From assembly GCA_025558095.1 (NCBI GenBank), contig JAIVFI010000028.1:372001-436000 (forward strand): DNA of 64,000 nt. Reading direction: 5' to 3'. A program made the position numbers and the translations under genes. This stretch comes from Hyaloraphidium curvatum SAG 235-1 (taxonomy: Eukaryota; Fungi; Monoblepharomycota). Positions within the stretch are counted from its first letter, which is position 1, and each line of letters starts with the position of its first letter. The notes under the pieces are model-generated. The model had not been told where the DNA came from, did not search any database, and saw nothing but the letters and a program-made list of their open reading frames with translations. Of this stretch, positions 1,362 to 50,231 are shown piece after piece.

Positions 1362-4300
1362 TCATCGTTCCCTGGACAATGCCTGCAACAGGCTCTTTGA
1401 CTGCGGCCTCCCGTTTCTCCTGTCGTCCTTCGCGACGCGCGTCTCCACAGAGGCTCCGGACCCTCTGGAAATCGCTTCCGCGCCGGGCTGTGAATCCGAG
1501 GATTTGCCGACGGTGAAGGTCCGTCCCTTGCCTCCCAAGCGGTCGTTTGTGTCCGCTTTCGCAAACTTGGACAGAGCACCGGGGCTTCTGTTCAGCAGCG
1601 AACGACTGTTCTGGATGCTATGCTGGCGACGTTTCTTTACCGCGAACCACGGCTTAGATTCCCCCTAACATGCAGTGAGAAGGAAGGAACACACCGTGGC
1701 GGAGTCCGGATGAAGGCGATCTCTGCCTTTCCGGGGTGTTTTGCGCGATCGATCGAGGATCTCGAATGCGCCCTCCTCGTCAGAAGATGCATCCTTGCGA
1801 GGTGACGCGGGACGTATTGCCAGTGACGGACGAGTGTCCACTGCTGTCGCATCCTGCGAAGCAATGCATGAGGTCACGTCAGCAGTCCCGAAAGGTCATC
1901 CAAGCACGTACCTCTTCCTTCGTCTCTCCATCTTCGTCCTCGTCAAAAAGACGCCATTGAGGGCGCTTCTTTTTCCTGGTTTTCTCGGCGTCCGATCCCG
2001 AAGAACGCGGGGCGTCCATGTCGACGTCCAGGTCCGACTCAAGTGAATTTCTGTCCGCATCCGTGCGTCGAATGCGTTTTGTTCCGTGATTGCGAGATCT
2101 TTCCGAAACGGTGTCAGCCTCCGAGCTTGCATCTTCGTCGCTGCGCTCCATGTCGTCCTCCTCGTACTGATCGTCGTCCTCGCTCTGGTGCGCGGAATCG
2201 GTCGACACAACGCCAACGGCGTCCGACTTTCTTTCTTCCCAATCCAGGAAGCCGCTTTTGTCGGCGGTATCCCCAAGAAAGGCCTTTCCGAAGGCGGCCG
2301 TCTCTGGGTTCGAAGCTGATGCGCTCGTCAGGGGCGGTCCTGGCGGATCAACGTGCATGCCTTACCCAGCTTCTCGACAACAGACATGTCGTCGCCGCGC
2401 TTCCTCTTCCCCGGACCGTATCTGCGCTGCAGGTCGTTGGCAAGGCGTATAGCCTTCAGGAGCTCGAGATCCTCGTCTTCCGAGTCATCGTCGAGGTAGC
2501 GCCCGTCGAGCCCAGTCCGTCCGCGCTTGCGCAGGTTGCCAGAAGTAACGTCCTTGAGAAGCTGGTTCACTTCCTCCTGATCCTTGGCCGCGAGCTCGGC
2601 CCGGTGCTGGCGTAGGATAGCATCCAACTCTTCCGGCGCGTGGTCTTCCGCATCCTTCCCCGTAGCGATCAAATCCGCCAGGTCCTTTCCGTCATCGTCA
2701 TCCGAGTCCTCGCCGTCCGGGCCTCCGAGCCCCTGGAATTCGTCCTCCTCCTCCTCAGCCTCATTCAGGACGAACATAGACTTGTTCTTCTTCGACTTAG
2801 GCTTGACGATCACCTCGTCATCGTCGTCTCCCGCAGCTTGCGTATCGCTTATGGGAGCTTCCGAAGCTGGACCGCTCGGAGATGCAATGCTGGATTCGCC
2901 TTCGTTGGGCTCCGAAGGGGCGTCCTCGCCAGCATCCGCGTCCGCATCCGCATCCGATCCTTCGCTCTCGCCGCTGCTTTCTTCGCCAGTTTCTTCTGCG
3001 GAGCCTTCCGAAAGGCCTTCCTCATCCTGCGAGTCCACGTCGGCACCGGACCCGCCGTCAGATGCAGCGTCCTCATCTCCCCCGTCATCGCGATCGCTGC
3101 GGTCTTCGGCAAACATGTCCGTTTCAGAGCCCGGCTCCCCAGATTTGCCGCTTTTGTGCAGTGTTGCAGCCGGCTTAACCGGATCTGCGGCCTTCGGGCC
3201 GGCAAAGAAGGACCTGATGTCATTGCCCTTCTTGCCCAGTGCCCTCGCGGCTTCCAGCTTGGCCTTTTCCCGCTGTGCTGCCTTGGCCTTGAGCTCCTTC
3301 GCCGTCTCCCGTTTGGTGTCCAAGCGTGCGTTCAAGTCCGAAACAACGGCAGGCTGCGCGAGGTAGTCGAGGTCCGCGTACGCAGGAGGAACGACAGCGT
3401 CTGGCGGTTGCACGGGATCCACCGGCAGAGAATCTTCCGCAGAGTACGACAGCTCTATGTGAATGGGTGCTGCAGAGTCTTGCGATTCGGCGCTTTTCGG
3501 CACCAAGCCGGGCCGTGTGACGATGGTAAGCTGTAACGGATACGAATGCAGTCACACCCAGACCGCCCGAAACAACGAATGGGCTTACTTCGGGTCTGTC
3601 TTTTGCTGCTCCGCTGTAGCCTTTTTGCTGGATGGCAGGCGAGTCCATCTGGCTCTCTTGGAAGAGCTGGCTGAAGCCCACTTTATGCCGCGGATCGACG
3701 CCACGGGGCGGCGCCGCAGAGGCGCCAACATCTGTCGGCACCTGCGAGTCAGCGAACAGCTGACTGAAGCCAACTTTATGTCTCGAGTCAATGGCGCCTG
3801 CTGGCGGGGCAGAATTGGCGGGAAGCGATGCTTGCGAATCTTTGAAAAGCTGGCTGAAGCCGATGACATGGCCAGGATCGACCCCGGCTGGCGAAAGGCC
3901 CCCGATCGACGCTTGAGAGTCCGCAAAGAGTTGGCTGAAGCCAATCTTGTGTTGGGGATCCACCTGCATAGATGATCCCTCCTGCACGACCTCGGCGGCC
4001 TTTGGCGAAAGAGCTCGTCAGCAACGGGAGGCATATGAGCGACGCAAGACTCACCGCAGGGCTGCGATCGGTCATTCCTTCATCATCCCCGCTCCCGTCG
4101 GAATCGAGTCCGGGGAAAGGATAGAGGAGGCTGTTGGATTCAGGGGGTGGCTGATAAGCGGCTTGCAAGACCTTGGAAGACATGCTGGCAGGGAATCCCG
4201 CGCGGCGAAACGGATCGGTGTCTTCTTCCGAGTCTGAGGCTGGCTGCACGCGATCCGCGGCGGGCTTGGCAAGTTCCGGGGATGCCACAAGGATGGATGC

Positions 4301-6239
4301 AACCCGAGATGGCGATCGAGCAGTACGCGCAGGCGAAGGCCGCCCGGAGTCCGCCCGAACGGTACGGACGGGCGACGCAGACGCCGCCCTACGTTTGCGA
4401 TGCAACTTGCGCTTGCCACGCCGCTCCGACTCGGGCAGACCAGCGTTGACAATGTCCTCGTCCCCGCTGTCCAGGTCGGAATCCCGCTTTTCCGACTGAG
4501 CGTCACCTTCTCCCTTCTCTGGTGGTGTTTCTGCGGCTGGCTCCGCCCCCTGTGCAGGCCTCTGCCCCTTCTTCCCGCTCTTCATCCCCAGTCTGTCGTC
4601 CGCCTTTTCCTGGGCACGCTTTGCCGCAAGGACCTGCTCCTTCTGCTTCTTGTACTGTTCCTTCTGGCGCAGAGCGTGGAGTTCGGCCTGCTTGGCGAGC
4701 TCGGCATTCCTCTTCGCCTTCAGGGAGCTGACAGCATCCACGCGCTTTGCCGCTGGGCGGGAAGCCGGAGCTCGAGGTCTTGCGGGAAGCGGATCGTCGT
4801 CGTCGAGCTCAATGACGGCCGCTTTTGCTAGTGCCGGCTTGTGTGGCATCGGCACGACGCCTCCAGGTCCATCGGTTCCCGACTTGACGCCGTCAGCAAG
4901 ATCGTCGACGGTTGGTGCGCCATTCGAGGGGGCTGACTCGACGGCGGGCGCTGCTTGTCTAAGCAAGGGACCGTTTAGCCCGTAGTCCGCATCGCGCAAT
5001 GTCCTTCAAGGGCTCACTTGTCTTTCGGTTTCCCTGCACCGAAACGGCTGAGAAAGTCCCTCATGTTGAGCTGCCTTGCAACAGTCATCTCCAGGCTGAC
5101 CACGCCGGTGCGCTTCAGCCTGTCGGACTCGCGGTGGAGCTCCTTGAGCTCTTTTTGGTTCAGTTTCTGGGAACAGCACAGATGAGCAGAGACGGGCGGC
5201 AGGGAAAACGACTGCGCACCTTGAGCCTGCGATGCTTCCCCTTCCTGGCACCATCATCCGAGCCTGATCCTGCATCTGCATCCGAAGCGGAGCCCGCCTT
5301 GCCCTCGCCTCCTTCGCCGGGGACCTGCGAATCGTCGGGGATCTCCGGGATGGGGGCATCATCCTCCAGGCCCATGGCCTCGCGCTTCCGGCGGTCGTTC
5401 TCCGCATCCCTCCGGATCTCTTCCTCGAGCTCTTCCTGGTCGGAGAAGTGGAGCTCCAGGTCCATGTTGGGGTCGAGGGGCTGGCTGGGCATCATCTGGC
5501 TCGAGCCGAGGTCTGCTTCCGGATCGGCGGGAGGGTTCTCGTCCTTGGGAGAACCGGCGTCACCCGCGTCCGATTCGGAGGGCAAGGCCGCGGGAAGGGC
5601 CTTCTTGATCGCAACCGGGGAGGCCTCCGAGGAGGAAGATCCGAGAATGCGCTTCCGCCGTTTCTTCTTCCCCTTCGACGACGCGTCCTTTGCGGCTGCG
5701 CTCGACTCCGACTCTGCCGAGGCGTCGTCAGCCTGTTCCTTCGGGGACGGCGATTTCATCTTGGGCGACCGGCGCTTGCGGTCCACCTCTGGGCTTTCAG
5801 AGGGGGAGCTCATCGAGGGCGGCTTTGGTACGCGGGCTGGCGACGGATCCGCGGGTCTGGCCTCCGTTTCCGACGGCATGGTATCGTCCACGTCCATTCG
5901 GTCCATTCGGACTGGGGGTCCGGGGGCGGTCGGGCTGTCGTGGGGCGACGGACCGTTGTTCTCGGCCGGTTCGCTCAAAGCGTCCTCGGAGCCGTCTGCG
6001 GCGGATCTCGGCGCGTCTCCGTCCAGCAGATCGAGCAGCGAGTCTGCCGACACGTCGTGCAGCGCGGCATCTGCGCGGACGCGCGTCGGGGGCTCGCGGG
6101 CGGCGGGCGGTTCCTCGGGCCGGCCTCCCTCGCCGCGTGCGGGCTCGCGCTTGCGCCCGTACGTTTTGGCGGACCGCTTGGCCGCGACGGGATCGCCGGG
6201 CACTTCAGCCGCGTCGCCGTGCGGGTCAACCGTCAGCAT
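1362..6239 (-). CDS. MRC1: Mrc1/claspin-like replication checkpoint mediator, multi-exon
   Basis: MRC1-like domain FVLNEAEEEEDEFQGLGG...DQEEVNQLLKDVTSGNLRKR...DDSEDED (ORF 2328-3506); long acidic/low-complexity exons; SQ-rich repeats. ATG at 6239; inferred last exon ends ...ALSRER* at 1362. Confidence 0.8.
3655..3965 (-). repeat. Four tandem coding repeats of (V/I)D(P/S)xHx(I/V)GFSQLFx(D/E)SQ within Mrc1
   Basis: VDPQHKIGFSQLFADSQ, VDPGHVIGFSQLFKDSQ, IDSRHKVGFSQLFADSQ, VDPRHKVGFSQLFQESQ in ORF 3220-3987. Confidence 0.9.
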
Positions 6240-32600: not shown

Positions 32601-33066
32601 GCGGTGGGCTAAGGCCAGGGACCCCGCGGGATTGACTATTTGTTAGGGGAACTGGGTCCTGGCCGATTTTCAGGCCTTAGCTGTGGTTAAATTTCCCTAA
32701 GCCCGAATCTAACTTCAACTCGGCGACCCACGCCAAAATGCTTCCCACCACAGATAAGGGCCAAAAATCCCGGAAAAGCAGGGCACTGCCTACATCTTGC
32801 AGCTCACGAAACGGCAAATTCATGGCATTCAAATTGTGTGTGGGGTGGCGAGTTGAAGCTCCCGCTCATCTTTGTAATTCAGTACTGTAGTGCTTTCCCC
32901 GGCAAGGTACTCCTCCTTCGGCATCTCAACAATGAACGGGTTCCCATATTGGCCCACTGCCTTGACCTTTGTGTTGTAGAGCTTGAGCTGGAGGTCAGGA
33001 CTCATCCCAGGCTGCTCCCTGATGTCACGGAGCCAGAGCCCATAAGCAGCATTCATCTTGGCCTCT
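29700..33066 (-). mobile_element. Non-LTR retrotransposon 3' half (copy C), interrupted at 30607/32888 by a DNA transposon
   Basis: Segments 32888-33066 and 29700-30607 rejoin as GGGGAAAGCAC-TA-GGGACAAAGTG, matching copy A at about 23700; C-terminal RTCKHDPEHIGDEQHFLFHC zinc-knuckle-like motif. Confidence 0.85.
30608..32887 (-). mobile_element. IS630-Tc1-mariner DNA transposon, Sailor-like DD96E, 2280 bp, TA target-site duplication
   Basis: TA|CAGT...ACTG|TA ends; subterminal inverted repeat 30649-30676 vs 32832-32860; transposase LDESY / MDNAAYH / LPPYHPKLNPIE with intron 31791-31842 and a frameshift near 31950. Confidence 0.88.
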
Positions 33067-33077
33067 CTAGAAAAATC

Positions 33078-33396
33078 ATTTACGCAACCGAAAAGTCCTG
33101 GGCGCGACCGGCTACAGCCGTTTTGCTCCTGTGCGTGACCCGCTATTTCCCTTGCGCGACTTTTGCCTCATGGGCGTGACCGGAAAATTGAAAGTGATCA
33201 TTGAGTCCCGCCGCGCGCTTTTATCAGGGGCTGGGGAGCGTTTCCGATTATGTGGGGACGGTCACGGGCTATGGGGCCGGTCGCGCCCAGGAATACAGGG
33301 TCACGCCCAGGAATGCCGGTCACGCCCATGAGCTACCGGTCACGCCCAAAATCCGAAAAAGACCGGTCACCCCCAGTAAATTAAGGGCGCGTAAAT
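33078..33396. mobile_element. MITE/foldback-like non-autonomous element
   Basis: Terminal IR ATTTACGC / GCGTAAAT; left arm has TGGGCGTGACC-like units, right arm has about six inverted GGTCACGCCCA units at about 20-nt spacing; no ORF. Confidence 0.75.
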
Positions 33397-33422
33397 AGGG
33401 AATGCCTCTTCAGGCGAGAGCC

Positions 33423-34805
33423 TAAGGGGTACTACCAGCTGCTTGGAAAGGCTCACGCAAGGCGCAAGGGCACCCCGTGCCCTTTGCAGAGCTGGTGCGC
33501 CACATGGAGATGGTCGCCAGCGCCGAGTACGTGACCAAGATCAAGGAGGATCCAAGGCTCACGTTTCCACCACTTCCCAAGGCCACGATCACGCCTTCTG
33601 GAGACCTGCTGCGCCCCATCACCCTCAAGGAGCTGGAGAGGGTCTTGAAGAAGGCCCCCAACGGCAAGGCAAAGGACGAGGATGGGATCCGGCTCGAGTT
33701 CGTCAAGTACGGGACTGCAGTACTGAAGCAAGCTGTTGTCAACCTCCTCAACGACGTGCTCAATGGCATCAAGATGGATGACTGGGGCCAGACACTGCTG
33801 GTGATGCTGCACAAGAAGGGGCCCAAGAACGTGGCTGGCAACTACCGAGGCATCAGCATAGAGAGGATGCTGGAGAAGGTCAACAGAAGGTCTTCTCCCT
33901 GGTCTGGAACGCTCGGCTAGCTCCCTGGGCTGAGTGCAACAAGCTGCTGGAAGGCTCGCAGTTTGGATTCCTTCCGTGCACGGAGATCGACCCTTCATGC
34001 AGTGTTCCTTGCCGAGGCACTCTTCTCCCTGGCCAAGGCACGCAAGGAGAAGCTGATCATGGTGTTTGTAGATTTCACAAAGGCTTTTGACACGGTGGAG
34101 CGCCCCAGGTTATGGCAGAAGCTGGAGGAGATGGGTATACCCAAACAGGTTGTTGACATGTTCGAGATGGCGTTCGGGCGCGTGTGGGGACGGCTCCGGG
34201 ATGAAGACGGGACCAAGTCAGACTTCATCAAGTTCCTGACCGGAGTGAACCAGGGGGACCCTCTCTCGTCGCTGTTCTTCATCTTGTTCATCAACGACAT
34301 CACTGCTTTCATGGAGGCCAATGGTGCAAAGGGGATGGATCTGGGCATGGTGTCTGAGGAGGAAGAGGATCAGGAGAGGATGGTCAGCTTGCTGGCTCTG
34401 TTCTTTGCAGACGACACCACTTTGATCTCGAAGACGGTGAAGGATTCGATGCCAAGATGCAGCTGGATCTTTTGTCTGCATATGCCAGTGCCAATGGGCT
34501 AGAGATCAACGTCAGCCGCAAGACAGAGTGGATGGCCAGGAAGAAACCTAACCGTGTAAAGCTCATGTACAGGGACCAGGAGCTGAAGAGGGTTGACAGC
34601 TTCAAGCTTCTGGGGTATCAGCTGACCTCAACCGGCCGGAGCAAGGACCATGCATACATGTGCATGGCAGAGAGGCCAAGATGAACGCTGCTTATGGGCT
34701 CTGGCTCCGTGACATCAGGGAGCAGCCTGGGATGAGTCCTGACCTCCAGCTCAAGCTCTACAACACAAAGGTCAAGGCAGTGGGCCAATATGGGAACCCG
34801 TTCAT
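33423..34805 (+). mobile_element. Non-LTR retrotransposon reverse transcriptase fragment (copy D), frameshifted
   Basis: NGKAKDEDGI, NYRGIS, FVDFTKAFDTV, GVNQGDPLSSLFF, FFADD, FKLLGY are canonical LINE RT blocks. Confidence 0.93.
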
Positions 34806-34886
34806 GCCTTTTGACTATAGATTTTGGTACAAAATCGAGTCAAAAGGTTGGGGAAAAAGTGCCTTTTGACTATAGATTTTGGTACA
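34805..34886. repeat. 27-bp direct repeat overlapping a hairpin
   Basis: TGCCTTTTGACTATAGATTTTGGTACA at 34805-34831 and 34860-34886; CCTTTTGACT/AGTCAAAAGG and GATTTTG/CAAAATC stems. Confidence 0.85.
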
Positions 34887-35844
34887 TCTACAACCGCGTG
34901 CTCCAAAGCGTCAAAGTAGCGTCTATGTCGGAAGAGGAACGCGCCGAACTTCGGGCACGGAATGCCGTTGCGAAGAACAAGTCTCGGCGTCGTGCACGGT
35001 CAGGTGCGTTGAGCGCGGCGTCACAGCACCCGTTGCCGCCGCTCACACGGTCGTTATCTACGCGCGCGAAGAGGACGTTTCTTTTGCCGTTGCAGAGTCG
35101 TGGCATGACGACGGATGTGTTAGTTCTGAATGTGGGGAAGGTTGGACACGGTCGTGCGCAGCCCCGCCGGGTGTTCTGATTGCGAATCGCGTCCAGCGCG
35201 TTCCGAAACCTTCGAGGTGGAAAAGACCAATCTCGGATCCGAGGCCTGCTCCCGGCACTGTGGGCGGACGCCGATTTGGGCGCAACGCGTTGCACCTTTT
35301 GACCCTCCCTTCCAGCGTCACCCACCAAACGCCGGGCCACGCAACCCACGGACGCGCCGATTGCGGGCACTACGTTGGGTGGGTTTGAGAGGCGCTTGAT
35401 GTGCAAGGGCAGATCATGATTGCTGTGCCTTGCAGGATCCACCAAGAAGCGTGTTCGGGTAGCGGGAGCGGCAAGTCCGGTGACCGTTGACCCGATCCTG
35501 GGTGCGTTGTCTGTTTGCGCGTGCCTTCCGGCCTCATTTTGCTTTCCGTCCCGCAGATCGCGATTGTTGCGGAAACGAAAGCGCGAGGGCCGGGGGCACA
35601 CGCGGTGTGGATCCTATGGACATTGACATCCCAATTGCAGGTTTGCCTCCGCACGTTCGGTCCCGCTTCGACCGTTGGTTTTATTTCTCTTCTTAGGTTC
35701 ATCTGGCACAAATCTCGAGCGCGACACGGCCGGCCGGACGGAGCCCGTCCCTTTTGCACCCGGCCGCGGCACTTCCGCGTTGGCAGGTGGCACCGGTTCG
35801 TGCCAGGCAGCTTAACTTCGTGGCAGTGATCTAACTGGCCGCGC

Positions 35845-36189
35845 TTGGCAGATTCGGCAGCCTCCTCAATGGACCCCCTTGTCGATCCCGCCTACTCAAC
35901 TACTCATGGGTTTGCTCGCGCTCGATTCGTCAAGACCGTACGGGACCTGTGCGACAGCGTCCGTGTCGACCCATGCAACGTTCCGCATGGGTTTGCTTGT
36001 CCTCCAGAGAACAATGAGGAACGAATGAAGTGCATGGAGGCTTGGTTGGATGCAGTCAGTGAGGAAGCTATGGAGCAGGCAGTCTGCGGGTCGTGTGCAC
36101 GTCTCTGCTTCAAACGTCATTCCACCACCGTCAACTACGTCTGTGGAGGGTCTGACTCTGGAAGTGGAAGTACTTTTCAGCAGAGCTGA
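35845..36189 (+). mobile_element. Possible Helitron N-terminal CxxC fragment
   Basis: FACPPE...MEAWLDAVSEEAMEQAVCGSCARLCF resembles the region preceding fungal Helitron Rep domains; weak. Confidence 0.3.
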
Positions 36190-36469
36190 GATTCTGGACG
36201 TGAAAAAGAGCGGACTGTTCACAGCACCTGCTGACCTTTTGCTCCATCCAACCTTTGTGGATAACCCTGCGTTGCGCGCCGAGTTTCCAAGGGCTGGTCT
36301 CACTTCATTGCGGATCATCATCTGCAAACCCGCGAAGCCAAAGGTGCGCAAAAACAATGATCATTGATCTTTCCTTTCGTGGAAATGCATCCAACGAAGC
36401 ATGTGTGTGTGCACTGTGCCTCTTATTGGACACATACAGAGTAGCATGCAAGAATTGCTACTGCAGAAA

Positions 36470-36800
36470 ACTGGTGTAACACACAGCAGCCAAGCCAGGG
36501 GCAGGTCTGGGTCACCAATACTTTGCTACTCCAGTAAAACAGGTGACACAAAATGGCAAAAGGCACTGTGCAGCAAGAAGCTTGCTTCTTGCCCCATGCA
36601 CTCATTTTTGTGCAGCATCACCAGCAGTGTCTGGCCCCAGTCATCCATCTTGACGCCATTGAGCACGTCGTTGAGGAGGTTGACAACAGCTTGCTTCAGT
36701 ACTGCAGTCCCGTACTTGACGAACTCGAGCCGGATCCCATCCTCCTCCTTTGCCTTGCCGTTGGGGGCCTTCTTCAAGACCCTCTCCAGCTCCTTGAGGA
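36470..36800. mobile_element. Small LINE scraps: + strand 3' end (36470-36527) and - strand copy of 33620-33815 (36595-36800)
   Basis: Direct sequence identity to other copies in the window. Confidence 0.8.
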
Positions 36801-38200: not shown

Positions 38201-39857
38201 CTAGGCAAACTTCCACGCGTCCTCGATGCCGCGCCCAAAGTCCCAAACCATGATCTTTCGATCCTGCAGCCGACCAGTCAGATGTCGGACCATGGGTTTG
38301 CCCGTCCCCAACCCACCTGGCTAGCGCTCACGATCCTCCTCGGGCTCATCTGGACGTGAAACACCCAGCTCGAATGCGCCTCCCGGAGATCCAGCATCGG
38401 CCGCGTTTCCTGCCCCGCGGCGCGCAGGTCCCAGACCTTGATCGCCTGGTCGTACGATCCGCTGACGATGCGCTCGTTGTCGAACGCCAGGGTCCGCACG
38501 AGCTCCGTGTGTCCCTGGGGTCCGTCCAGCGTGCGCGCACACGTGCCCGTCCGCGCGTCCCAGACCTTGACGCTCTTGTCGTTGGACCCGGAGACGATCA
38601 GGCGGCCGTCGAACTGGACGCAGGCGAGGCCCCGGCTGTGCCCGACAAAGTCGCGGATGCAGCCGCCGGTGTTGAGGTCCCACAGCTTGACGGTGCAGTC
38701 ACCCGAAGCGCTCGCGACGAGGTTCCGGTAGAGGTACACGGCGTTGACGGCCGCATGGTGGCCCTCGAGCGTCCGCCGCACCGTGCCCACCGCCTCGGGT
38801 TCGGAAGTGTCCAGGTTCCAGACCTTGATCGTGCAGTCCTTGGAGCAAGAGACGATGGACCTCTCGTCGAAGCGCACGTCCAGGACCGGGCTCGCGTGGC
38901 CGCGCAGGATGCTGATCCGCTCCCCGGTCGCAAAGTCCCACAGCATCATGGAGCTGTCCGACGATCCAGACACCACAAGGCCGTCCGAGTGCCGCATCCC
39001 GTCGTCGTCGGGCGCGAAGAAGGGCACGGCGATCTGGTTGCTGTACTGGAGGCAGAGCACCGAGCCGTCGTGGCCCCGCATGGTGCGGAAGTTGCGGCCG
39101 CTGCGCATGTCCCACCACTTGATGGTCCGGTCCCGCGAGCCCGAGACGATCGTGTCGTTGTCAAACTGCACGCAGTAGACCGAATCCGTGTGCCCCTCCA
39201 CCTTGCGCTGCTCGAACGAGGCATCCGTCCAGTTCCTGTTGAGCGCGAGCCGGTTCCGGAACAGGGAGCTGTAGTCCTGCGGCTGGCTGCGCTCCGAAGC
39301 GACGAGGCCCCGCGGGATCGGCGAGGGATCCACGAGCGGGAGCGGGGGGAAGGACGGCAGGGCGGGGGCGACGGGGCACGGCTTGACCCAGCGCTCGACA
39401 AAGAGCACCCTCCAGATTTCGTTGTCCCGCGTCATGGCGTACCAGCTGCGGCACACCATGGACGCCCTGGCCACGTCCTGCACGGTCGGCAGGAACGTGA
39501 GCACGTGGATGGCCAGCTCGTAGGGCAGCGCCGTCAGGAAATCTGGCAAAGGCAATTTTTAAGACTGCTGCGACTCCACTCGAGTGGCGGCGACGTACCC
39601 ATGGTGTAGTCGGCGTCCTCGAACTCGAATGCCGAGTCCGTGGGGCTGTCGGCCCTGCGCTGCCTCTGCAGCGATCCCACGGGGACCGGGCCGGCCGAAG
39701 ACGGGCCCGCGACCGGCGACGGCGGCAGCGGCGAGCCGGGGCCGGCCGGGGGGTCGATGTCCATTGGAGCAGAGCCCGCGGGGCTTGCGGGCGCGGCGGC
39801 GGCGGCGGTGGCGGCGACCAGGTAGTCGAGCGGGGCGGCGGGGTCGCGCGACCGCAT
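38201..39857 (-). CDS. F-box/WD40 protein, beta-TrCP/FWD-1/Pof11-like
   Basis: F-box LPYELAIHVLTFL...VCRSW...IWR; seven WD40 repeats (GHTDSVYCVQFD...SGSRDRTIKWWD; GHSRGLACVQF); last exon DRKIMVWDF. Confidence 0.92.
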
Positions 39858-40128
39858 GCGCGTGTTGTAGCGGTGGCCGAGCGCGGGCTGGCCGGCGACG
39901 ATCGCCGGCGGCGTCGACGCGCGCGGGGGGCCGCCGGCGCTGTTGCTGCGGCGGAGCCACCTGCGGGGAGTCAGCCGCGGCGCACGCAGGGCTCGGCTCC
40001 CGCACCGCTTGATGCTCTGCATGGCGGACGGCGATGGGCGGCGCAGGGGTCGAGGGACGCTCGGGCCACCCCACGTCAGGGCAGTCGGTCAGGCAAGGGG
40101 TTGCGGGTACCGGCCGGGTGGGGCGCTA

Positions 40129-43100
40129 GTTTCACACACAGGTCCCGAGCTTGCCGGAGTCGCCGCGTGCGAATTTGCAACCGCTAGAGCACAGTCTCCA
40201 TCGCAAAAGGCGCGTGGTGCCTCCTGCGTCGCATCGGGGAACGGCACGGCCAAAACATGCTTCTGAGCGGGCCAGAAACCGCGGTTCGGCTCAAGCAGAC
40301 CGGCAAGCTTGGCCCGGACGAGATTGCTGCTGTACTCGCAATTCACCGAACGACGTATTTCCGTTGGATCCGCCGATGTGGGGCTCAGACCGTTCCGGAC
40401 CATCCCCGCAAGGCCTTCCGCAAGGTGTCCGAGGAAATGGTCCGGCACGTAGTTGACGAGGCCAAAGCTCGCGTCCGCGTGACGCAAAGGGAGCTCGCTG
40501 CTGACCTGGCGGAAAAGTTTGGCGTTTTGGTGTCGCAGCAGCATATCTCGCGGCTGCTGAAGGCCAACAGGGTCACGAGGAAGAAGCTCACCATTAAGAG
40601 CGCCGAAGCCCTGAAACAACCCGAGCGGCACCGCATGTTCCACGAGAGGGTCACTTCCTTTGATTTGGGGCGCCTAGGTGCCTTGGACGAGTCCTCATTC
40701 CAACTCAACGATCCGGGGCGCTTCGGCTACTCGGAGAAGGGGACTCCCGCCGTCGTATACCTGCCAGGGAACCGGGGCCCCAAGGTGACCCTTTGCCTCG
40801 CCATCTCACCCACTTCGCGACCCGGTAATCACACTGGAAACGTGATCTCGTACCAGATCTACAGCGGCAACATGAACACCGAGAGGTTCTGTGCTTTTCT
40901 CAAGACTATTCGCGCCGGGGCTTGTGGGTCCGAGTCCCTGGGCGTTATCCTGGACAATGCGGGTTTCCACGGCTCTCCTCTGCGGGCAAGGAAGACCACG
41001 GACGGCACGGCAATAATAAAGAACCTCTCGGGCAAGTCGTTCCTTGCGGTCCAGGCCGTAGCAAAGGCCAACAATCTGAGCCTCATCTACCTGCGACCGA
41101 GATCGCCGGAATTTAACCCGACCGAGTACGTGTTTGCCACGATCAAGAACCTCGTGAGGCGGGACTGCCCCAGGACGGTGCCGGATCTCGTCCGGTCCAT
41201 CGAGAGGGCCATTCAAATCGTCGGCCACGGCGATCTGATGGCGACGTTCCGGCACTGCTTGAAGCTAAGCGAGGCTGAGTTTGTGCGCATCGCGGAATCC
41301 GCGTCCGCCGGCAAATGTGTGGCGCGGAAGGTCACACTACAAGGTCAGATCTCTGCCTTTGCTTCTCCGGCTCCTCAGACGTGCCCTTCCGCGATGGAGG
41401 GCGCAGCAGCGACCCAGACCGAAGCAAACGCGGCCGAGCGGCTCGCTGAAGAGGTGGACTGCCATGACGGTTGCGCATCGGGCATGCAGACCGCGCTGAC
41501 TCACGACAACGCCCACTCCGAGCAGGCTCGCAACCTCGGCGTCGCCCACATCAACCCGCACCAAAAGCACACTTTGCTGACCCTGAGGGAAGTTCTCCAC
41601 GTCGATGGTTCGGCGAGGGAATTCTTTGGGCCGTGGAACGACTTCACGGACTCCGCTCAAAGGACCGCGGGCTTCGACGCTGCGGACGTCCTCGGGGGCC
41701 TCTCCAACCTCGGTGAAGCTCCTTTTGAGTTCATCTGTCAGCGGGTGGCATCGGGTCGGGGGTACAAGCTGGAGCGCGAGCTTTTCGTCGCGCGCCTCCG
41801 GAACATCGTCGCCCGGCGGCGCCGGGTCGCCCCCAGTCTGATCGGACCAGACGCACCGGCACCTCCCTTTTTCCGCCCCGCGGACGATGGCGCGGATCTG
41901 GGACCGCCGTCAGCCCCCGACGTCTCCATCTCCCAGCTGGATAACCTCGCCCGCTATGCCGACGTCCCACCGGAACTTAACGTCTCGTTCAAGAAAGCCA
42001 GCCGCGCCGCGTTGAAACAGCTGTTTCCGCTCTCAGCCCTTGCAAACGACACCGTGCTGGACGAGAGGTTCGCCATCCTCCTATCGGGCCTTGTACGAAA
42101 CGGTCGTGGACCAGAATGGCTACGTGCGCTCGCTGTTTCTCTCTGGGGACAGCTCGGCCCGGCCGGGAGGGCACGCATGGACAGCTTCGAAACATCCGAG
42201 ACAGCACGTCGTGCTCTGCATTATGTTCACCAGCCCATTTCGAAGGTCTGTCGGTTGGAGTACCTCGAACGCGCGGCTTCGACCGAGTCTTTGCCAAGGA
42301 ACCTTAGGCAGATACTGGAGGAAGCGTGCCGCACGCTGAAGGACCAGCAGGGCCGCTCGCTTTTTGATGCGTCGCCCGGCCTGGAGTACTTCCTTGCTTC
42401 GCTCTCCCTCCCGCAGCGATGCAAGATAGTCATGGCGGCGCGTTTGCCGGATAGTGTGGCGAGTCGCAATGCGGAAGGGCGCAAGAGATTCTTCGATTGG
42501 GCGGTGTGGAACCCGATGGCGGCCAACGAGGAGGCCCTCGCCATCGAGAATCCGGGTTCCGTTCCCGTGCTGGTGTGCAATCTCCTGTCGAGCAGCCCCG
42601 CAATCCCAAACTGATTTTTGCCCCGGCAGCTGCTTTCGTTCCCGGGCCTTTTCCAGATGAGCCCGGGCGTACCTGGACTGGATGCAGAGGGCGATAAGCT
42701 GCTGGCAACCCTGTTCCTGAAGGCGGAGCAGCTCGGGTGGGAACACTCTTCCATGGTGACGCTGCGGCTGCTGGAGTCGGGGCCCAAGATGCGCGATTTT
42801 ACCCTGGACTTGTGCGGTATGCCCGCGCTGGTGCGCGGTAGCAACCCCGAAGCACGGCAGGAGGCCGCGCGCACCGCGCTCGACGCCAAGCTCCACTTCC
42901 TCGCGGAATCCGTTGGACTGCTGGACTTCGGCCGTATCCAGAAGCGGGATTGTCCGCTCTGTTCCTTCAGTGTGCAGGTGGAAGGCGAAGTCCCGGCGAA
43001 GGCTGGGCGGCGGCGCAAGGTCGCGGCGTCGGGGATGGTGGCTGACGGAGCTGCGCGGGAGCGTGTCTATGACGCCGAGCTTCGGCTCCTCCACCACGTC

Positions 43101-46100
43101 AAGGGTGCGCACCTCACCTGCAGAGCGTGCCCGGGGAAGGGACATCAGTTCGACCTCGAGAGTGAGTTCCGGCAGCATGTCGAGGAGAACCACCGTGGGG
43201 CGTGAGTTGCACCGCGCTTTCCATGCATGCCTGGGACCGATGCGAAGCTGACCGCCGCCGCGGACAGTTTGGTCGCCCCAAGGAATCTCACCACGTCGTT
43301 CGGCCAGTTCATTGCCAACGCACACTACATTGTCCCGTTCGCGTCGACAAACCTCAAAGCCAACATTCCTACGGGCCTCGGCGGCTCGTCCTGCCCTTTC
43401 TGTTTCGCCGGTGGCGGGAGGCACCGGCAGGAGTGCTCTCCGAAGCGGCGGTGGGTCGCGCTCAACGGCTTCCTCGCACTTGGCGACCCCCAGCACGAGC
43501 GATACAAGACGATGACGGAGCTGGCCGTCGAGTGGTTCCCGGCGGCCGAGGTGTGCCACCCATGGGCGCGGGGCCCGTACGAGCAAGTCGGGCCCCTCAT
43601 CACCAAGGCCTGCACCCTCGCCGCCATCTTGTTCAAGATCATCTGGACCAAGATCTTGTTGCAGATCCACAACAAAGAGCTCCCGGACCAAGACGGATCC
43701 GTCACGCAGGACATGCTCGCCAGCTTTCCCCCGTCTTACGTCGCAAAGATTGCCATCCACGCCGTGCTTGGTGCCGGCCAGATGTCCGCCGCTGTTGGAA
43801 CCCGCCGCGCGGGAAAGCAGAAGTCGGCCGGGCTCGGTGCTGGGGCGAGATACTCGGGCCATTCGTGTGCGCCAGGAGTGGAGCAGCTTGTGGACGGCGG
43901 TCCGGACCTCGGAGCCAACGACGACGATCGAGACGAGGTGCTCGAGGACGTTGACTTCGAGGACGATGACGACGCGATGGCCGAGGACCAGGCCGGCGCC
44001 AAGATCTTGGCCGACTTCTTGCACGGCGAGCTGGATCAGATTGAGGACGAGGACTTGGTTACGGCTGAGGACACCCCCGATCTCTCGCAGGTTGCTGATC
44101 AGGGCGCACCGTCCGTTCTCACCGTCGCGGAGCACAACGCAGCGGCAAAGCTTGTCCGCAAGGCGGCCGTTGCTGCGTTTGCAGAGGCGCGGGAACTTGT
44201 GGGCGAGACGTACGAAAAGCTCAGGCCGCTTTTCGTGCAGGGACCTTTGCTCCGCTATGCCGAGCAGGTCGCTTTCAACCGAGCTCGAAGCGTGCCGCAG
44301 CGGCTGCTGACTGCGCTCAAGGTTCTCATCCGTCGCTTCCTACGCGGGGAGGTGAACGCGGGCGTCGGCCGGAGGCGGATTGGCCCAATCCTCAGCTACG
44401 CTCTGGCAAAGCTCGGATATGGGGACGACGACTTCTCCAATTTCCCGTTCGAAAGCGCATTTGGCTGTGGTCTTGCCGAGGCCACGGAGCTCAGGGTCGG
44501 GCTGGGGAGGCTTTTCCGGCCGTTCAGAGGCTTGCAGCTGAACCGGATCGTTGACCTCCGGGATTCAAAACAGAAGCCGCCGGTGCCGGCAACCGTTTCG
44601 CAGCGGAGGGTTATCGCTCGGGTCCTGCAGGACAAGCAGGCGGGCAACCCCGTGGCGGCCGCGGTGCGAACCGTGAACCTGCCGAAGGGCAAGCCGCGCG
44701 GAAAGGTCGACGCGGAAACGGAGGCGGTGCGCAGCTACCTCCAGAACATTTGGGAGACGCTGCCGCGGGCCTCACCTGCGGAGAAGGCTGACTTGCGAAA
44801 GGTGGAGCTGCAGGAGCTGAGGGACTGGGTGGTTGCAAACCGTCTACAGCTTCGGAGCATCCCCTTCCGCTACCCGGCCGTGACCACGGCAACGATTCGG
44901 TCGACAGAGCAGAAACCCAAGTTCTGGGTCCCCGAGCACGCCGAGGACATGAACGAGGCGGCGGCGGCGGCATTGGTGGGGCAGAACCGGCCCCACTGGG
45001 AAAGCGAGAAGCTTCTGGTGGCGCGGATGAGCGAGTATGACCTCGACAAGTGTCGTTCATCCACGAACCCCGCGGACGAAGCCTTCGGCTTCCAGATGTG
45101 CTTCATCGCCCTGCACGAGCTCGAAAAGCAGGACGAGGCGCTGAAGAAGAGGGCCGCGTCCGCGGCTGCTGCACTGCCGGGACCTGGAACGGCGCGGAGG
45201 ACGAGCACCGCCAGGGACCCCGATTCAACCCCAACTTTCCCAACCATTTCAACTGCTCCGGTCAAGGACAGGGAGGCTTCGAACAAGACCAGGAGGGCCC
45301 GCAACACGTGGCGGCCGCACCGCGTCGAGAAGCGGCATTACAGCAAGAATGGCTCCCCGAAGCGATGGCACGGGTTCGTCGTGAGCTTCCGTAAGCGCCG
45401 ACCGCAGCCGGGGCCCGAGGGACTCGCCAAGAAGGAGACCATGGAGACGAAGCGGCGGGAGCGCAAGGCGGCCGCCGCCGCCGCGATGGCGGGGCTTGGC
45501 GCCGCCCAGACCGGCAAGGAAAAGGCAGCCTCGTGGGCGCGGCGGAAGCTTCGGGCTGCGGTCGCCGAAATCAGCTTGTCCCCCGTGACCGTCTACATCT
45601 CGGCCTCGGATCTGCCCGAGTTTTTGTCCAAGCTGGGCGTGGAGGTCGCGCCTGGCATCGACACCTCGCGCGTTGACTCGGACTACCTATTCGGCCACCT
45701 GCTCAACGGCGGCAACCAACTCGTCAACGAGGACCGGCTCTTCCGCCTCCGTCAGCAGGGCAAAGTCTCGGCAAGGGGCCATGCCGCCGCCACGCAGCCC
45801 ATCTATCGTCGCACCGCGGACGTTCTGAGGTACTCCGGCGTCCGGGGCATCTATCATTGCGGCAGCACCCTGGGCATTCTTAACGAAGAAGTCTCCTTCG
45901 TGGAAAAGGTCTCGTTCCAGCAGTCGCAGCAGCAGGAGCGGCAAAACACGACACAGGACGTCGAGCCGCCAAAGCGCGCAGCGCATTCGCCAGCAGCCGC
46001 GCCGGCTCCTCCTGTTCAAACTCGGCCCACCGTCTCCGTTCCCGCCGCAGCTCATGTGCCCGCCGGTCTTGCTGCTTTCGAAGTGGATGTTTCGTTCCCT

Positions 46101-48746
46101 CGCGATGTTCCGATGGATCCCTACCCGCCGCTCTACACCGGTCCATGGCTGCCAAACGGCGATCCGGACCCGCCGTGCGACATGGCTGTCTTCGATGGTG
46201 GGCATTTTGCTCAGTGACGCACGGGTTCGGAGGCTGATCGGATCCTCACTTTTCCAGGCCAGAATCGGATTTGGCATGGGGGCATGGTCTACTACCTGCA
46301 GGCGACGGCCCAAGGGGACGAATCGGTCCCGATGGATTGGGAGCCCTCTTATTGTGCCAGCAGCAACCTTAACTTCACCACCATGCCTTCCGAGCCTCCG
46401 GCGGACTGCGGCATCCCCGCCGCGGTCCCGCCGGAACCCCCGCCCTTTTTCTCCTTCGTCGAACCACCAGCCTCGACTTCTCTCCCTGCCTCCATTCCCC
46501 CGGAACCGCCCCCGCATTGGGTGCACGACCCGTGCTCGTGCTGTCAAGATGCCGCCTGCAAGGCCGTGGACTGTGCGCCCAAGGTGTTCGCGCCCCTGAG
46601 CTCGGGGCACAACGACCCTCCCTGCGCGACTGTCTCGCCCGGTGACTCGGTGCCCGAGACTTCTGTGCATCCATGCGCGGCCCTTCCTTTCCCCGACTTC
46701 TCGCCGCCACTTCCTTCCCCCTTCCTTTCTTGCTTCCCTCCCGAAGTCGTCGTTTGCGCGGTCGAACCGTCGCCGCCGACGGTAACGGTCGAGGGCAAGT
46801 TCGCTGCCCCCGTACCTCCTCAGCTGGCCCCGACCCCGGTTCCGCTCCCGCCGCGTTCTGCCGAGCCGTTGCCGCGGCCCCCGGTCGACTTCAAGACTGG
46901 CATTCCCGTCTACTACCTCAGCCGCCCTGACCATGTGTCCGTGCTGGCACCCAATCTCCTGCACATGCCGACGCAGGCGGAAATGTTCGAGCGGGCCGAG
47001 CGCGGCGAGCCAGTGGAGGGCGGGGTCGTCGACGTGGATCCGAATCGCTGGTTTCTGGCTGTTGCCAACCGCCGCGTCGACGTGCGGCTCGTTGCCAAGA
47101 GCCTGAACCCCGGGCCGAACGGACGCTACGACTTCGCCAACAGTCATCTGCCGGGGACAACGGAGCGCATCACCGTGACCAATGCCGACGGCACCAAGTC
47201 GCACTACGTGCCGAAGCGGGCGAACCCGTCCAAGGCCGACGGTTCCGTCAGCTTCGGGAGGATCGTCGGCTTCCACCTAGAGCACTCCTGCTCCGATACT
47301 AAGCGGATCGCAAGGTCTTTCGGTCCGTCGCCGCCTGCCGCTGGAGCGTGCAGACACCACCCGCTCTGGGAGCCCAAGATCTCGGAGTTCAAGCCGCCGG
47401 CGCCCGATTCGCGCCCCAACGACGCTGCAAAGGCGGAGAAGCACGCTCGGCGCAACGTCGAACTGTTCCCGACCCCTGGCGGCTGCACGGACGAGTTTGG
47501 TGCCAAGCTGTGGGGCGAGGTCGCTGGTGCCGGCCGTGCGGGGACCCCGGCGCTGCCGGAGCTCATCCTCGGTGTTCCGGCCAAGCTCGACCGCCGCCTG
47601 TGCGGCTACGACAAGGCGGCCGCGCGTCTGAATGCCACCAAGCGGACCACCATGCTGGACGTCAACGATTGCGAGGGCAACCCTGTGCAGAAGTCTCTCC
47701 ACGATTTCGAGCGCGACCTGCCCTCTCAACGCACGACAAACAGTGCAGCCTTCTCGGACTACACGAGGGCGCTGCTGCCACAACTCGACCGCATCCTGGA
47801 CGTCTACTGTTCCGGAGAACGGAGGTGGGCAAGCCAATCCCTGTGGCAACGACTTCGCTCACGCATCCTGCAGCCTGGATCGTGTGCGCACGATTCGCCG
47901 GCGCCGCGAGGTCCTCAGCTGGATCTGTCGCGACATGTGTCGCAACCCGTATTCGGGCAAGTACGATCCACAGACGACCATCGCATACGGCGCCGCGCGA
48001 TTCGGCCATGCGAGCAAGGGCGGCCCGGCCTCCCGGATCGTTCGCTTCAGGGCGGAGCTGGCCAAGGCCGGGATCATGGTCTTGGTCAACGAGTACCTCA
48101 CGTCCCAGATGTGCAGCTGGTGCGGCAGCCGCCGTGATCATCCGACTCGCCTGACGTCCTTTCCAGCTGCAAGACCACCTATGTCGTCGGAATCCGGAAC
48201 CCCGGCTCCAAGGGCGAGGTGCGCGGGGTGAAATACTGTCCCCTCTGCCGCCGCTTCTGGATGCGCGACGTGAACAGTGTGCACTCCATGGAGCACCTCT
48301 TCTGGTTCGGCCTCATCACCGGAGGGGAGCGCCCCTGGCCGTTCAGGCCGGACACCAGGAAGCCGAAGCCGCAGCCCAAGCTCCGAGCTGGGACTGGTGC
48401 AGCGCCGCGCAAGTCCGCGGGTGAGCGCGCTCGCATTCGCGACGGTCATCCCGAGCGTCATCCCGAGCTGATCCGGGAGCTCCAGGTGCCGCCACAGGCC
48501 GCAAGCGTACGGCCGCAAGCGCCGCGAATGGGTCGGTCAAGAAGCTCAAGCCGGCAAGCTGACCTGGCCGCGGAAACAGTTACAAGTTGGCGTGCCATGC
48601 ACCGCGTGGGCGCCATTGCATTTGCTTGATCGAGGTGGAGTCCGTCAGGGACCGCCTTTTATTCGCAGGCTCGATGATGAACATTGCTGCTAGGCCGCAA
48701 AGGATTGCGGCACAGGGGGAACAGTAGCAGTTTCTGAGAGTGTAGC
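40129..48746 (+). mobile_element. Putative Fanzor-carrying IS630/Tc1-like transposon; boundaries tentative
   Basis: Imperfect inverted repeat (14/18) 40124-40141 vs 48734-48751, with TA at 40127-40128 and 48747-48748. Confidence 0.45.
40257..48562 (+). CDS. Single spliced ORF (about 2650 aa): IS630/Tc1-type DDE transposase fused to zinc fingers and a giant Fanzor1 (TnpB-like RuvC) nuclease
   Basis: Introns 42573-42629, 43202-43267, 46198-46257, 47825-47873, 48120-48166 and 48421-48485 are all GT-AG with CTGAY/CTCAC branch points; the first five restore the downstream frame. DDE codons at 40686, 40953, 41124; RuvC D 47037 (VDVDPN), E 48091 (VNEYLTS), D 48267 (RDVN); CSCC...CPLC ribbon. Confidence 0.85.
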
Positions 48747-48765
48747 TAGCGATGGCCAAATAGCG
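48563..48765 (+). ncRNA. Candidate Fanzor omegaRNA scaffold plus flanking guide
   Basis: Directly downstream of the Fanzor stop; stems GCCGCAA-AGGA-TTGCGGC (48694-48711), CTGCTA/TAGCAG (48687-92/48725-30), ATCGAG/CTCGAT (48629-34/48670-75), GTCC/GGAC (48640-52). Confidence 0.45.
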
Positions 48766-48861: not shown

Positions 48862-50231
48862 ATGGCCCCGATGGCGGCAACACTCGCCCTCCTGGTCGCC
48901 CTCTCCCTGCCGGCGGCGCTGGCACGGAGCTTGCCTTCGTCCCGATTCCCCCACTATCGATGCCAGAACCACACCGAGCACTTCACGGACCCCTCGGTGC
49001 TCGTGAATGTAACGACCTGGGACGGCAACACGGACGGCAGGCCACGCTGGATTTCCGAGTACGACCCTTCTCACGCAGAGGTTATAAACGGGTCGGTCAG
49101 GATGTACCTGACTCCGGACACTCGCCCGGTTGCCAATGAGTGGGGAAGGATCATGGGCTGGCCGGTTGCGATCACGTCGTCGATGTGTACGTCGTGACAA
49201 GGGCGATTCAGGTCTTGTAGTAAGTCTTACTGCTGGAGCCCTCAGGGATCGGCCAGGGCAAGGTCTGCGCTCGGCTGCGCACGGGCAAGGGAGGCGGCAT
49301 TGTTACGGCGTTTATGATGGCTAGCTATTCTCAAGGGTACGAAGTTGACGACGAGCTCGATTGGGAAAGTGGGGATCAGCGACAAAGCGTCCCCGCGTGG
49401 AGGCGACATCGCTGACACCCTCACCGCGCAGTTGTCGGCAAACCCGAATGGCTGTCGGATGCGCAGAGCAACTTTTTCGCCCTGGGAAAGCTCAACTACA
49501 ACAACTCGCAACACTTTTGGGGCGCCCCGAACCTTGCCGAGTCGCAGAACGAGTATTGTTTCGAGCGGACAAAGGACCGGATCCTGTGGGTTTCTGGACG
49601 AGCTTCGGACATGGGAAGTCCTCTTGCTGATCATGTGCCTGCAGATGGATCTTGAACAACCAGACGGTGCGCACTTTGGTCCGGGAGCAGCACAACAGCA
49701 CCGACTTCCCGTACCGGACCGGGGAGCATCGGCTCATGAAGGTCGCCATCTCGCTCTGGGACGGCGGCAGTGGGCCCCAGGGAACGATGGATTGGTATGC
49801 GAAGGATGTACTCGTGCCGTGTCAGCGCTTTGACGCGGCGACGTTCCAGGTCCGGCGGCCCGACCAACTGGGACAACCCCCGCAACCCCGACTACGTCGC
49901 CACGGTCGACTGGATCCGCGTCGAGTGCTACGATTCCGAAGGTGTCGATCCCAGGACCGTGACCTCCTTCCTTCCCCCGCTCTCCACGGGCCGCAGCACG
50001 GCGACTCGCTCGGCGATGACGACAGCTTCGGTCACCTCTGCAGAGCAGTCTAAAACTGCGACCACGAGCACGCAGACGGAAATCGAGTCGCCCCCGCGTA
50101 CGACTAGCTCCGTCAGGAACCAGGAGTCTGAGAACTCTGCGGCATCCAAAGCGGATTGGGCGGCCATGATGACGCTTGCTGCCGAAGGCCTCGGTCTTGC
50201 GCTCTTCATATCATCGTGTTTGTTCATGTAG
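48862..50231 (+). CDS. Secreted GH16 glycoside hydrolase/transglycosylase (Crh-like), probably GPI-anchored
   Basis: Signal peptide; GGIVTAF; DELDWE (ExDxE); ISLWDGG...GTMDW-SGGPTNW; Ser/Thr stalk; hydrophobic C-terminus. Confidence 0.88.

Follow-up and report, generated by a model that had tools for sequence, protein, structure and literature searches.

A cut-and-paste transposon of Hyaloraphidium curvatum with a one-gene transposase–Fanzor fusion and insertions at a fixed distance from a short motif

Introduction

Fanzor1 proteins are carried by Tc1/mariner elements, of which PGv-1, PUl-1 and SPu-1 are described examples (PMC3627910, PMC10432273), and Fanzor genes can contain introns (PMC10530073). 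Known Fanzor1 target-adjacent motifs (TAMs) are 4–5 nt long (PMC13565253); they usually adjoin the left end of the element, include the left target-site duplication (TSD) and function in post-excision homing (PMC13565253, PMC10432273), their specificity residing in the variable WED region of the protein (PMC11423790). The role of Fanzors for eukaryotic transposons is an open question (PMC10432273). The natural guide-RNA-directed transposons described so far are bacterial relatives of Tn7 with several proteins: the CRISPR-associated transposons (CASTs) belong to the Tn7-like elements, employ TnsB, TnsC and TniQ, are nuclease-dead and follow a guide (PMC11406308). An engineered TniQ-TldR system inserts 47–68 bp from its TAM (bioRxiv 10.1101/2025.08.27.672191). 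Here we analyze a transposon of the fungus Hyaloraphidium curvatum SAG 235-1, in which an IS630/Tc1-type transposase and a very large Fanzor are joined in one spliced gene. It lies in a 64,000-nt stretch of assembly GCA_025558095.1 (contig JAIVFI010000028.1, positions 372,001 to 436,000, forward strand), referred to below as the window, whose numbering we use throughout. We call this element family A, and two diverged relatives families B and C.

Like the Fanzor1-carrying Tc1/mariner transposons, the element holds a DDE transposase and a Fanzor between inverted ends, the Fanzor being 3'-terminal and adjoining a candidate omega-RNA. Those transposons have two genes, a TA duplication and a TAM that includes the left TSD, whereas here we find a single open frame, a variable 2-bp duplication and a motif 20–24 nt off; the Fanzor part comprises ~1,690 aa compared with 633 aa in SPu-1.

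Results

One spliced gene joins transposase and Fanzor

The host genome (31.9 Mb, 55 contigs) is GC-rich and has short introns with CTRAY branch points. Database and structure searches were run exon by exon, reading frames were checked by arithmetic, and RNA contigs of run X1 were compared with positions 40400–46399, a range that ends ahead of the last three introns. The gene is organized as follows:

40257..41270, + strand: IS630/Tc1-type transposase with two helix-turn-helix (HTH) domains, D144 (40686), D233 (40953) and E290 (41124); NCBIfam and Pfam matches
40785..40856, + strand: exitron-like in-frame 72-nt skip that removes 24 conserved residues; joint in an RNA contig
41454..41525, + strand: in-frame linker intron, 72 nt; RNA joint, and family B has a 57-nt intron there
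41526..42572, + strand: exon, 349 aa, of no known family (no NCBIfam match below an expectation value (E) of 0.03); shows a coding signature and 38% identity to family B
42573..42629, + strand: intron, 57 nt, with the first in-frame stop (present in 8/8 copies checked); RNA joint
42630..43201, + strand: exon with two CxxC...H zinc-finger-like motifs, both CxxC kept in families A, B and C
43202..43267, + strand: intron, 66 nt; RNA joint
43268..46197, + strand: exon, 977 codons, putatively a Fanzor REC/WED region, greatly enlarged and carrying acidic as well as basic inserts; 35% identical to family B
46198..46257, + strand: intron, 60 nt; RNA joint
46258..47824, + strand: exon with a Pro/Cys-rich insert, the RuvC-I aspartate in DPN (47037; DPN invariant in A, B and C) and a long insert
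47825..47873, + strand: predicted intron, 49 nt; restores the frame, introns at the same place in B and C
47874..48119, + strand: exon with the GAAxF motif and the RuvC-II glutamate (48091), which precedes the zinc finger by six residues; 83% identical to family B
48120..48166, + strand: predicted intron, 47 nt; restores the frame; family B has a 58-nt intron here and family C has none, its joined motif running on without a break
48167..48420, + strand: exon with a C4 zinc ribbon and the RuvC-III RD (48267), from motif comparison of A, B and C
48421..48485, + strand: predicted last intron, 65 nt; GT..AG and frame arithmetic, similar late intron in B and C
48486..48562, + strand: last exon with basic tail and stop, from frame arithmetic

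An earlier note, made from the sequence alone, had proposed that one spliced gene fuses an IS630/Tc1 transposase to a very large Fanzor-type RuvC nuclease. This is borne out by our analysis, with both catalytic triads kept in three families. All six introns of the note (57, 66, 60, 49, 47 and 65 nt) are present with GT..AG ends and CTRAY-like branch points, and the joints of the first three (57, 66 and 60 nt) are seen in contigs of run X1; the last three are supported by the frame, by uninterrupted motifs and by family B introns that match. Since its contigs show splice joints, run X1 is RNA; it probably derives from the same strain and hence is no independent sample. The exons of the six-intron model sum to 7,962 nt, or 2,653 aa, with zero internal stops. 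The RNA contigs contain two additional in-frame 72-nt joints (41454–41525, an intron absent from the note, and 40785–40856), bringing the RNA-supported joints to five. Removal of the former reduces the product to 2,629 aa, and of both to 2,605 aa. Where the note had called for transcripts across 41250–41450, a single spliced contig of 1,698 nt runs from about the left end of the element to 41961, crossing the transposase end and the linker. Variants from several element copies are visible in the RNA contigs.

The segment 40785–40856 lies inside the Pfam DDE match, between D144 and D233; in families B and C this stretch is coding sequence under constraint (67% identity to family B; 75/79/42% at codon positions 1, 2 and 3). 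Its skip is the only form among contigs that cover the transposase, although contigs drop rarer variants. Judged from the sequence, the skipped form would be transposase-dead with an intact Fanzor. The first in-frame stop falls inside intron 42573–42629, so that retention of this intron would give a transposase-only protein.

Residues 1–338 constitute an IS630-type transposase (NCBIfam NF033545, 127 bits, cut-off 100) and also match Pfam DDE_3 (PF13358); the two HTHs and the DDE motifs that the note had placed at the N-terminus were found as described. D144, D233 and E290 are invariant across the three families. D233 and E290 are 56 residues apart (DD56E), and the insert responsible is kept in B and C; IS630/Tc1/mariner transposases usually show DD34–39E, a spacing from which the family A enzyme deviates.

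In the C-terminal exons we find DPN, GAAxF, NEYLTS, a C4 zinc ribbon and RD; the motifs quoted in the note are all there. Fanzors are defined by the order D ... TS-x-x-C4 zinc finger-x(5,50)-RD, with 125–275 residues from the first D to TS (PMC3627910). DPN, NEYxTS, CxxC...CxxC and RD are present in A, B and C, as this definition demands; the distance from the first aspartate to TS, ~337 residues (D2176, E2511), exceeds the defined range, the excess stemming from inserts. In the rearranged RuvC-II of Fanzors, the catalytic E is located six residues ahead of the zinc finger (PMC13565253), which is precisely the arrangement seen here (E-YLTSQM-C in A and B, E-YNTSKR-C in C). All three families have the GAAxF motif, which we compared with the conserved G of the Fanzor1 GxxxF, and the RuvC residues D, E and D are all retained in these diverged families. 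Profile matches of the family A C-terminus were weak (Cas12f1-like_TNB, E 8e-4), but its family C counterpart passed the cut-off of the TnpB zinc ribbon model PF07282 (39.6 bits versus 26.3, E 6e-10). The best PDB profile matches were TnpB, Cas12 and Fanzor2 chains, likewise weak (E 0.1–0.8); matches to L7Ae and prolylcarboxypeptidase were set aside as chance.

The Fanzor part spans ~1,690–1,700 aa, of which 43268–46197 may represent the REC/WED region, judging by motif resemblance. No homologues of the Fanzor part, Fanzor1 sequences included, were retrieved from a 5.8-billion sequence set, PDB sequences, phages or viral contigs, and exon 43268–46197 had no relative among 1.84 billion representatives. 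In the ESM Atlas, one exon was placed near unnamed clusters, viral and fungal (0.91), as well as a TNB cluster (0.89), and another near none; JGI metagenomes yielded two distant IS630 pieces and nothing more.

The transposon and its relatives

The element and its surroundings are delimited as follows:

40095..40102, + strand: host target motif AAGGGGTT, with its core GGNYT at 40098–40102, ending 24 nt before the element
40125..40126, + strand: left 2-bp TSD (GC), matching 48749–48750
40127..48748, + strand: whole family A transposon, 8.62 kb, with short imperfect inverted ends (TAG/TCG...CTA); 10 copies with sharp common ends
48563..48748, + strand: candidate omega-RNA region; a 36-nt block, 48624–48659, is common to A and B, and its GCTTGATYGA start occurs also in C
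48749..48750, + strand: right 2-bp TSD (GC), matching 40125–40126

The 10 copies of family A share 99.7–99.9% identity. In seven, the frame is free of stops and indels; three are damaged, one by a 1-nt deletion, one by a stop and a lost start, and one by a 171-nt deletion. The inverted ends, TAGTTTCACAC compared with TAGCTACACTC, are short and imperfect and do not rank with the longest inverted pairs. Nine of the ten copies are bordered by 2-bp flanks that match each other but vary in sequence from copy to copy (GC, CG, AT, TG, CC, TG, AC, AG and CC); those of family B read CC, CT and CG. The TA duplication of IS630/Tc1/mariner elements is thus not what these copies show. A TA duplication or a CTAG empty site was considered and ruled out by comparing the ten flanks, TA/TC/CA being element ends. 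Overall, the element has recently moved by cut and paste into targets other than TA. The left end reads TAG in four family A copies and TCG in six (L021-L030); a common set of internal substitutions in most TCG copies indicates the spread of two sub-lineages. Near 40146, 7 nt carried by most other copies are absent from the window copy.

Family B has 5 copies of 8.65 kb in the same genome. Its identity to family A is 65% in the transposase, falls to 30–47% in the middle and reaches 83% in the RuvC-II exon; third codon positions are 30–51% identical throughout, and in each aligned region, including the linker, conservation follows codon position 2 > 1 > 3. Nine predicted introns, several of them frame-shifting, give one frame of ~2,665 aa. 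The predicted last exon of family B enters the conserved 3' block (L031:9002-9225), so that coding sequence and candidate omega-RNA overlap, as in TnpB. Family C was traced via P0001 (46%), the sole transposase homologue retrieved. It is a 10.3-kb element in many ENA metagenome assemblies unrelated to this genome, and six predicted introns with consensus donors yield one frame of ~3,175 aa; one of these, frame-shifting and 68 or 77 nt long, directly follows the transposase. In all three families the first stop-bearing intron comes after the transposase. The post-transposase exon of family C contains two diverged internal Trp-rich repeats (L036:2400-3620) and has no clear similarity to that of family A. 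The single transposase-to-RuvC frame, which the note had proposed to seek in other copies and genomes, is therefore kept in B and C as well, and three separate intron sets that all preserve it make chance or mis-prediction very unlikely.

At least two further transposase–Fanzor pairs, ~8 kb apart, are indicated in the genome by coordinates alone. Diverged relatives with 45–53% identity in the transposase are located at C2:427078-435543, C2:397977-406415, C5:421677-422693 and C23:314216-315232; two have a same-strand Fanzor-like match ~8 kb downstream and two have open frames of 822–913 codons.

The candidate omega-RNA region folds no better than shuffled sequences (z -0.7 to -1.2). A perfect 7-bp hairpin at 48687–48716, without counterpart in B or C, contains AAAGGATTGC. 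Of all 10-mers in the element, this one matches the family A target consensus best, though marginally (7.12 versus 7.0 by chance).

A motif at a fixed distance from the insertion site

In eight of the nine TSD-intact family A copies, GGNYT (extended, AAGGGRYT) ends 24 nt upstream of the element, and in the ninth 28 nt upstream. An unbiased scan of 400 flank columns returned this motif as the best window, its score being reached by 0/2,000 random sets. The right-side flanks of family A contain no such motif, so that the orientation of insertion is fixed; the last 20 nt of the left flanks show neither conserved bases nor an adjacent TAM. In family B, GCGYCGATC is found in 5/5 copies, and at 20 nt in the three TSD-intact ones (4/2,000 random sets). 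In family C, GAC occurs at 24 nt in 4/7 distinct sites (binomial 5e-6 for GAC at that position, ~3e-4 over all trimers); these flanks come from collapsed assemblies and are not pairable, which lends them moderate support. The gap between motif and insertion amounts to 18–22 nt. In copies without a matching duplication, the motif lies closer (family B, 5 and 17 nt; L033, L034) or is missing (family A; L022), as if short flank deletions had occurred after insertion. Integration is non-random, and its pattern suggests that a part of the fused protein positions the transposase. Families A and B have different motifs in one host, which points to the element's own protein as the reader.

The window copy sits in the short divergent promoter gap between two host genes. 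On its left (38278–40130), it lies ~100 nt upstream of a minus-strand host gene with F-box and WD40 domains, whose first exon likely begins at ~40022; to its right, a host gene starts at 48862 (+ strand), 113 nt past the right end. Elsewhere in the window (32932–36799), inverted pairs of 195 nt (98%) and 137 nt (99%) in a lower-GC stretch are probably nested repeat fragments.

Discussion

How the fused protein may choose its target

Some part of the fused protein appears to grip the motif and place the DDE site. We tentatively favor, as a reading that falls just short of probable, a cut-and-paste transposon whose one-gene transposase–Fanzor fusion has turned the Fanzor from a homing nuclease into a target selector. 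The Fanzor TAM groove is favored since the gap approximates one R-loop, since the families of one host have different motifs, as is the case for TAMs, and since the homing role has lost its TAM while RuvC is strongly conserved. According to this model, the N-terminal HTH-DDE part would bind the short inverted ends and excise the element, the tethered Fanzor, probably with the right-end omega-RNA, would grip the TAM-like motif via its REC/WED groove without need of a full guide match, and the DDE site would be held about one R-loop length (18–22 nt) away in one orientation, strand transfer then producing the 2-bp duplication. The ancestral TA target may have been absorbed into the element ends. 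Splicing might set the output: the DDE-core skip would leave the Fanzor intact but the transposase dead, and a retained intron would yield the transposase alone. The conserved RuvC triad may serve in omega-RNA maturation or in nicking close to the junction.

Several observations weigh against this model. In the engineered system, nuclease-dead TnpB and Fanzor2 fused to TniQ failed to target transposition (bioRxiv 10.1101/2025.08.27.672191). The 18–22-nt spacers match no sister right flank above random in A, B or C (four guide starts, 30 tests, P 0.05–1.0, copies still present), and no fixed guide within the element matches them. Known Fanzor1 TAMs are shorter and richer in AT than the motifs (~8–9 bp, G-rich), and a two-finger zinc cassette is conserved as well. 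Sample sizes are small, and the collapsed family C assemblies add to this. The sole RNA contig of the transposase region is devoid of 24 core codons, and contigs are unable to phase one 7.9-kb mRNA. Finally, single-exon models with a predicted local distance difference test (pLDDT) of 49 and 47, a quality too low for use, gave no match that would confirm the putative REC, WED and RuvC folds.

The most serious rival, given motifs longer and G-richer than known Fanzor1 TAMs, is that the zinc cassette or the orphan helical exon reads the target, much as TnsD does for Tn7, while the tethered Fanzor, a passenger, serves a different purpose, for instance empty-site cutting or RNA processing. Two CxxC...H motifs are kept in A, B and C, G-rich motifs of 8–9 bp suit two or three C2H2 fingers, and no guide match was found. 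Yet the gap equals an R-loop length, and a Fanzor without an adjacent TAM loses its usual job although the RuvC-II exon is the best conserved (83%); we thus consider this reading somewhat unlikely. True RNA-guided integration by a one-protein eukaryotic CAST, whose guide donors moved away or whose matches are short or tolerant, would fit the geometry of motif, ~20 nt and insertion, the intact RuvC motifs, the 3' non-coding block conserved in three families and the location of the best 10-mer target match inside the candidate omega-RNA. Spacers and sister right flanks agree at random level in A, B and C, however, and family B has no fixed guide, which leaves this reading rather improbable. The earlier note had inferred that the fusion could couple excision or integration to RNA-guided DNA recognition. 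Insertion is non-random and follows a fixed distance, but the spacers gave no guide match; the note's alternative of a one-protein cut-and-home system is weakened because the left-end TAM required for homing is absent.

Two further readings carry little weight. The working products could be separate, namely a short transposase (retention, stop at 42614) and a Fanzor made from an internal start or by skipping, with the fusion rare or inert. The position of the stop-bearing intron in all three families is in line with this, as are the DDE-core skip being the only form in the contigs, and a transposase contig depth of 1,084 versus ~2,900–4,700 downstream, with a break near 41961–41993, although contig depth is unable to rank gene parts and the lower value is not readable as expression. 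What makes separate products distinctly improbable is that three independent intron sets, frame-shifting ones included, preserve the transposase-to-RuvC frame, and that this reading alone gives no account of fixed-distance targeting. A host DNA-binding protein could also tether the transposase at the motif, as Sap1 tethers Tf1; the window copy occupies a narrow gap upstream of a host gene, and the family A motif resembles the AGGGG stress element. But families A and B share a host and have unrelated motifs and distances, whereas A and C, from different hosts, share the distance and a similar motif, rendering a host tether highly improbable.

Significance

In this element the Fanzor is built into the transposase, the homing position of the TAM is gone and a CAST-like distance rule has appeared. 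Were no guide needed, this would still constitute a new mode of target choice for a eukaryotic transposon and a new job for an OMEGA protein. Should a guide steer it, the element would be a one-gene programmable integrase already adapted to the nucleus. Given its one-sided distance rule, this young element may be a naturally occurring, self-aiming machine for gene insertion in eukaryotes. That a single polypeptide acts as an RNA-programmable integrase, in which Fanzor and omega-RNA pick TAM and protospacer and the transposase inserts 8–10 kb of cargo 20–24 nt away in one orientation, seems to us unlikely; if true, a change of guide would redirect insertion.

Comparison with known systems

No natural transposase–Fanzor fusion was found in the published literature searched, a scope that left most subscription papers and Repbase outside. 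With the IS630/Tc1/mariner family, the element shares two HTHs plus a DDE core, a passed IS630 model and a 2-bp duplication; it differs in the non-TA duplication, DD56E and ~2,300 extra C-terminal residues. IS630-associated TnpB of branch DDE-6 (PMC10691335) likewise combines an IS630 transposase with a TnpB-family protein between symmetrical ends, but as separate genes, in prokaryotes or giant viruses, and with no described fusion or distance rule. Features that define these nearest families thus fail here, which, together with the absence of such a fusion from the literature searched, sets the element apart. Its parts are known individually, and the mechanism is inferred.

Compared with CASTs, the element is IS630-type, consists of one chain, keeps its RuvC triad, inserts at 20–24 nt and shows no guide match; family searches detected TnsB, TnsC or TniQ in none of its exons, and guide-complementary targets were not recovered among right flanks and fixed element sequence of extant copies. 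It does, however, insert at a fixed distance and in a fixed orientation from a motif comparable to a protospacer-adjacent motif (PAM). Thus, as in type V-K (Cas12k) CASTs and the engineered TniQ-TldR system, a TnpB-descended module appears to fix the distance and orientation of insertion from a short motif.

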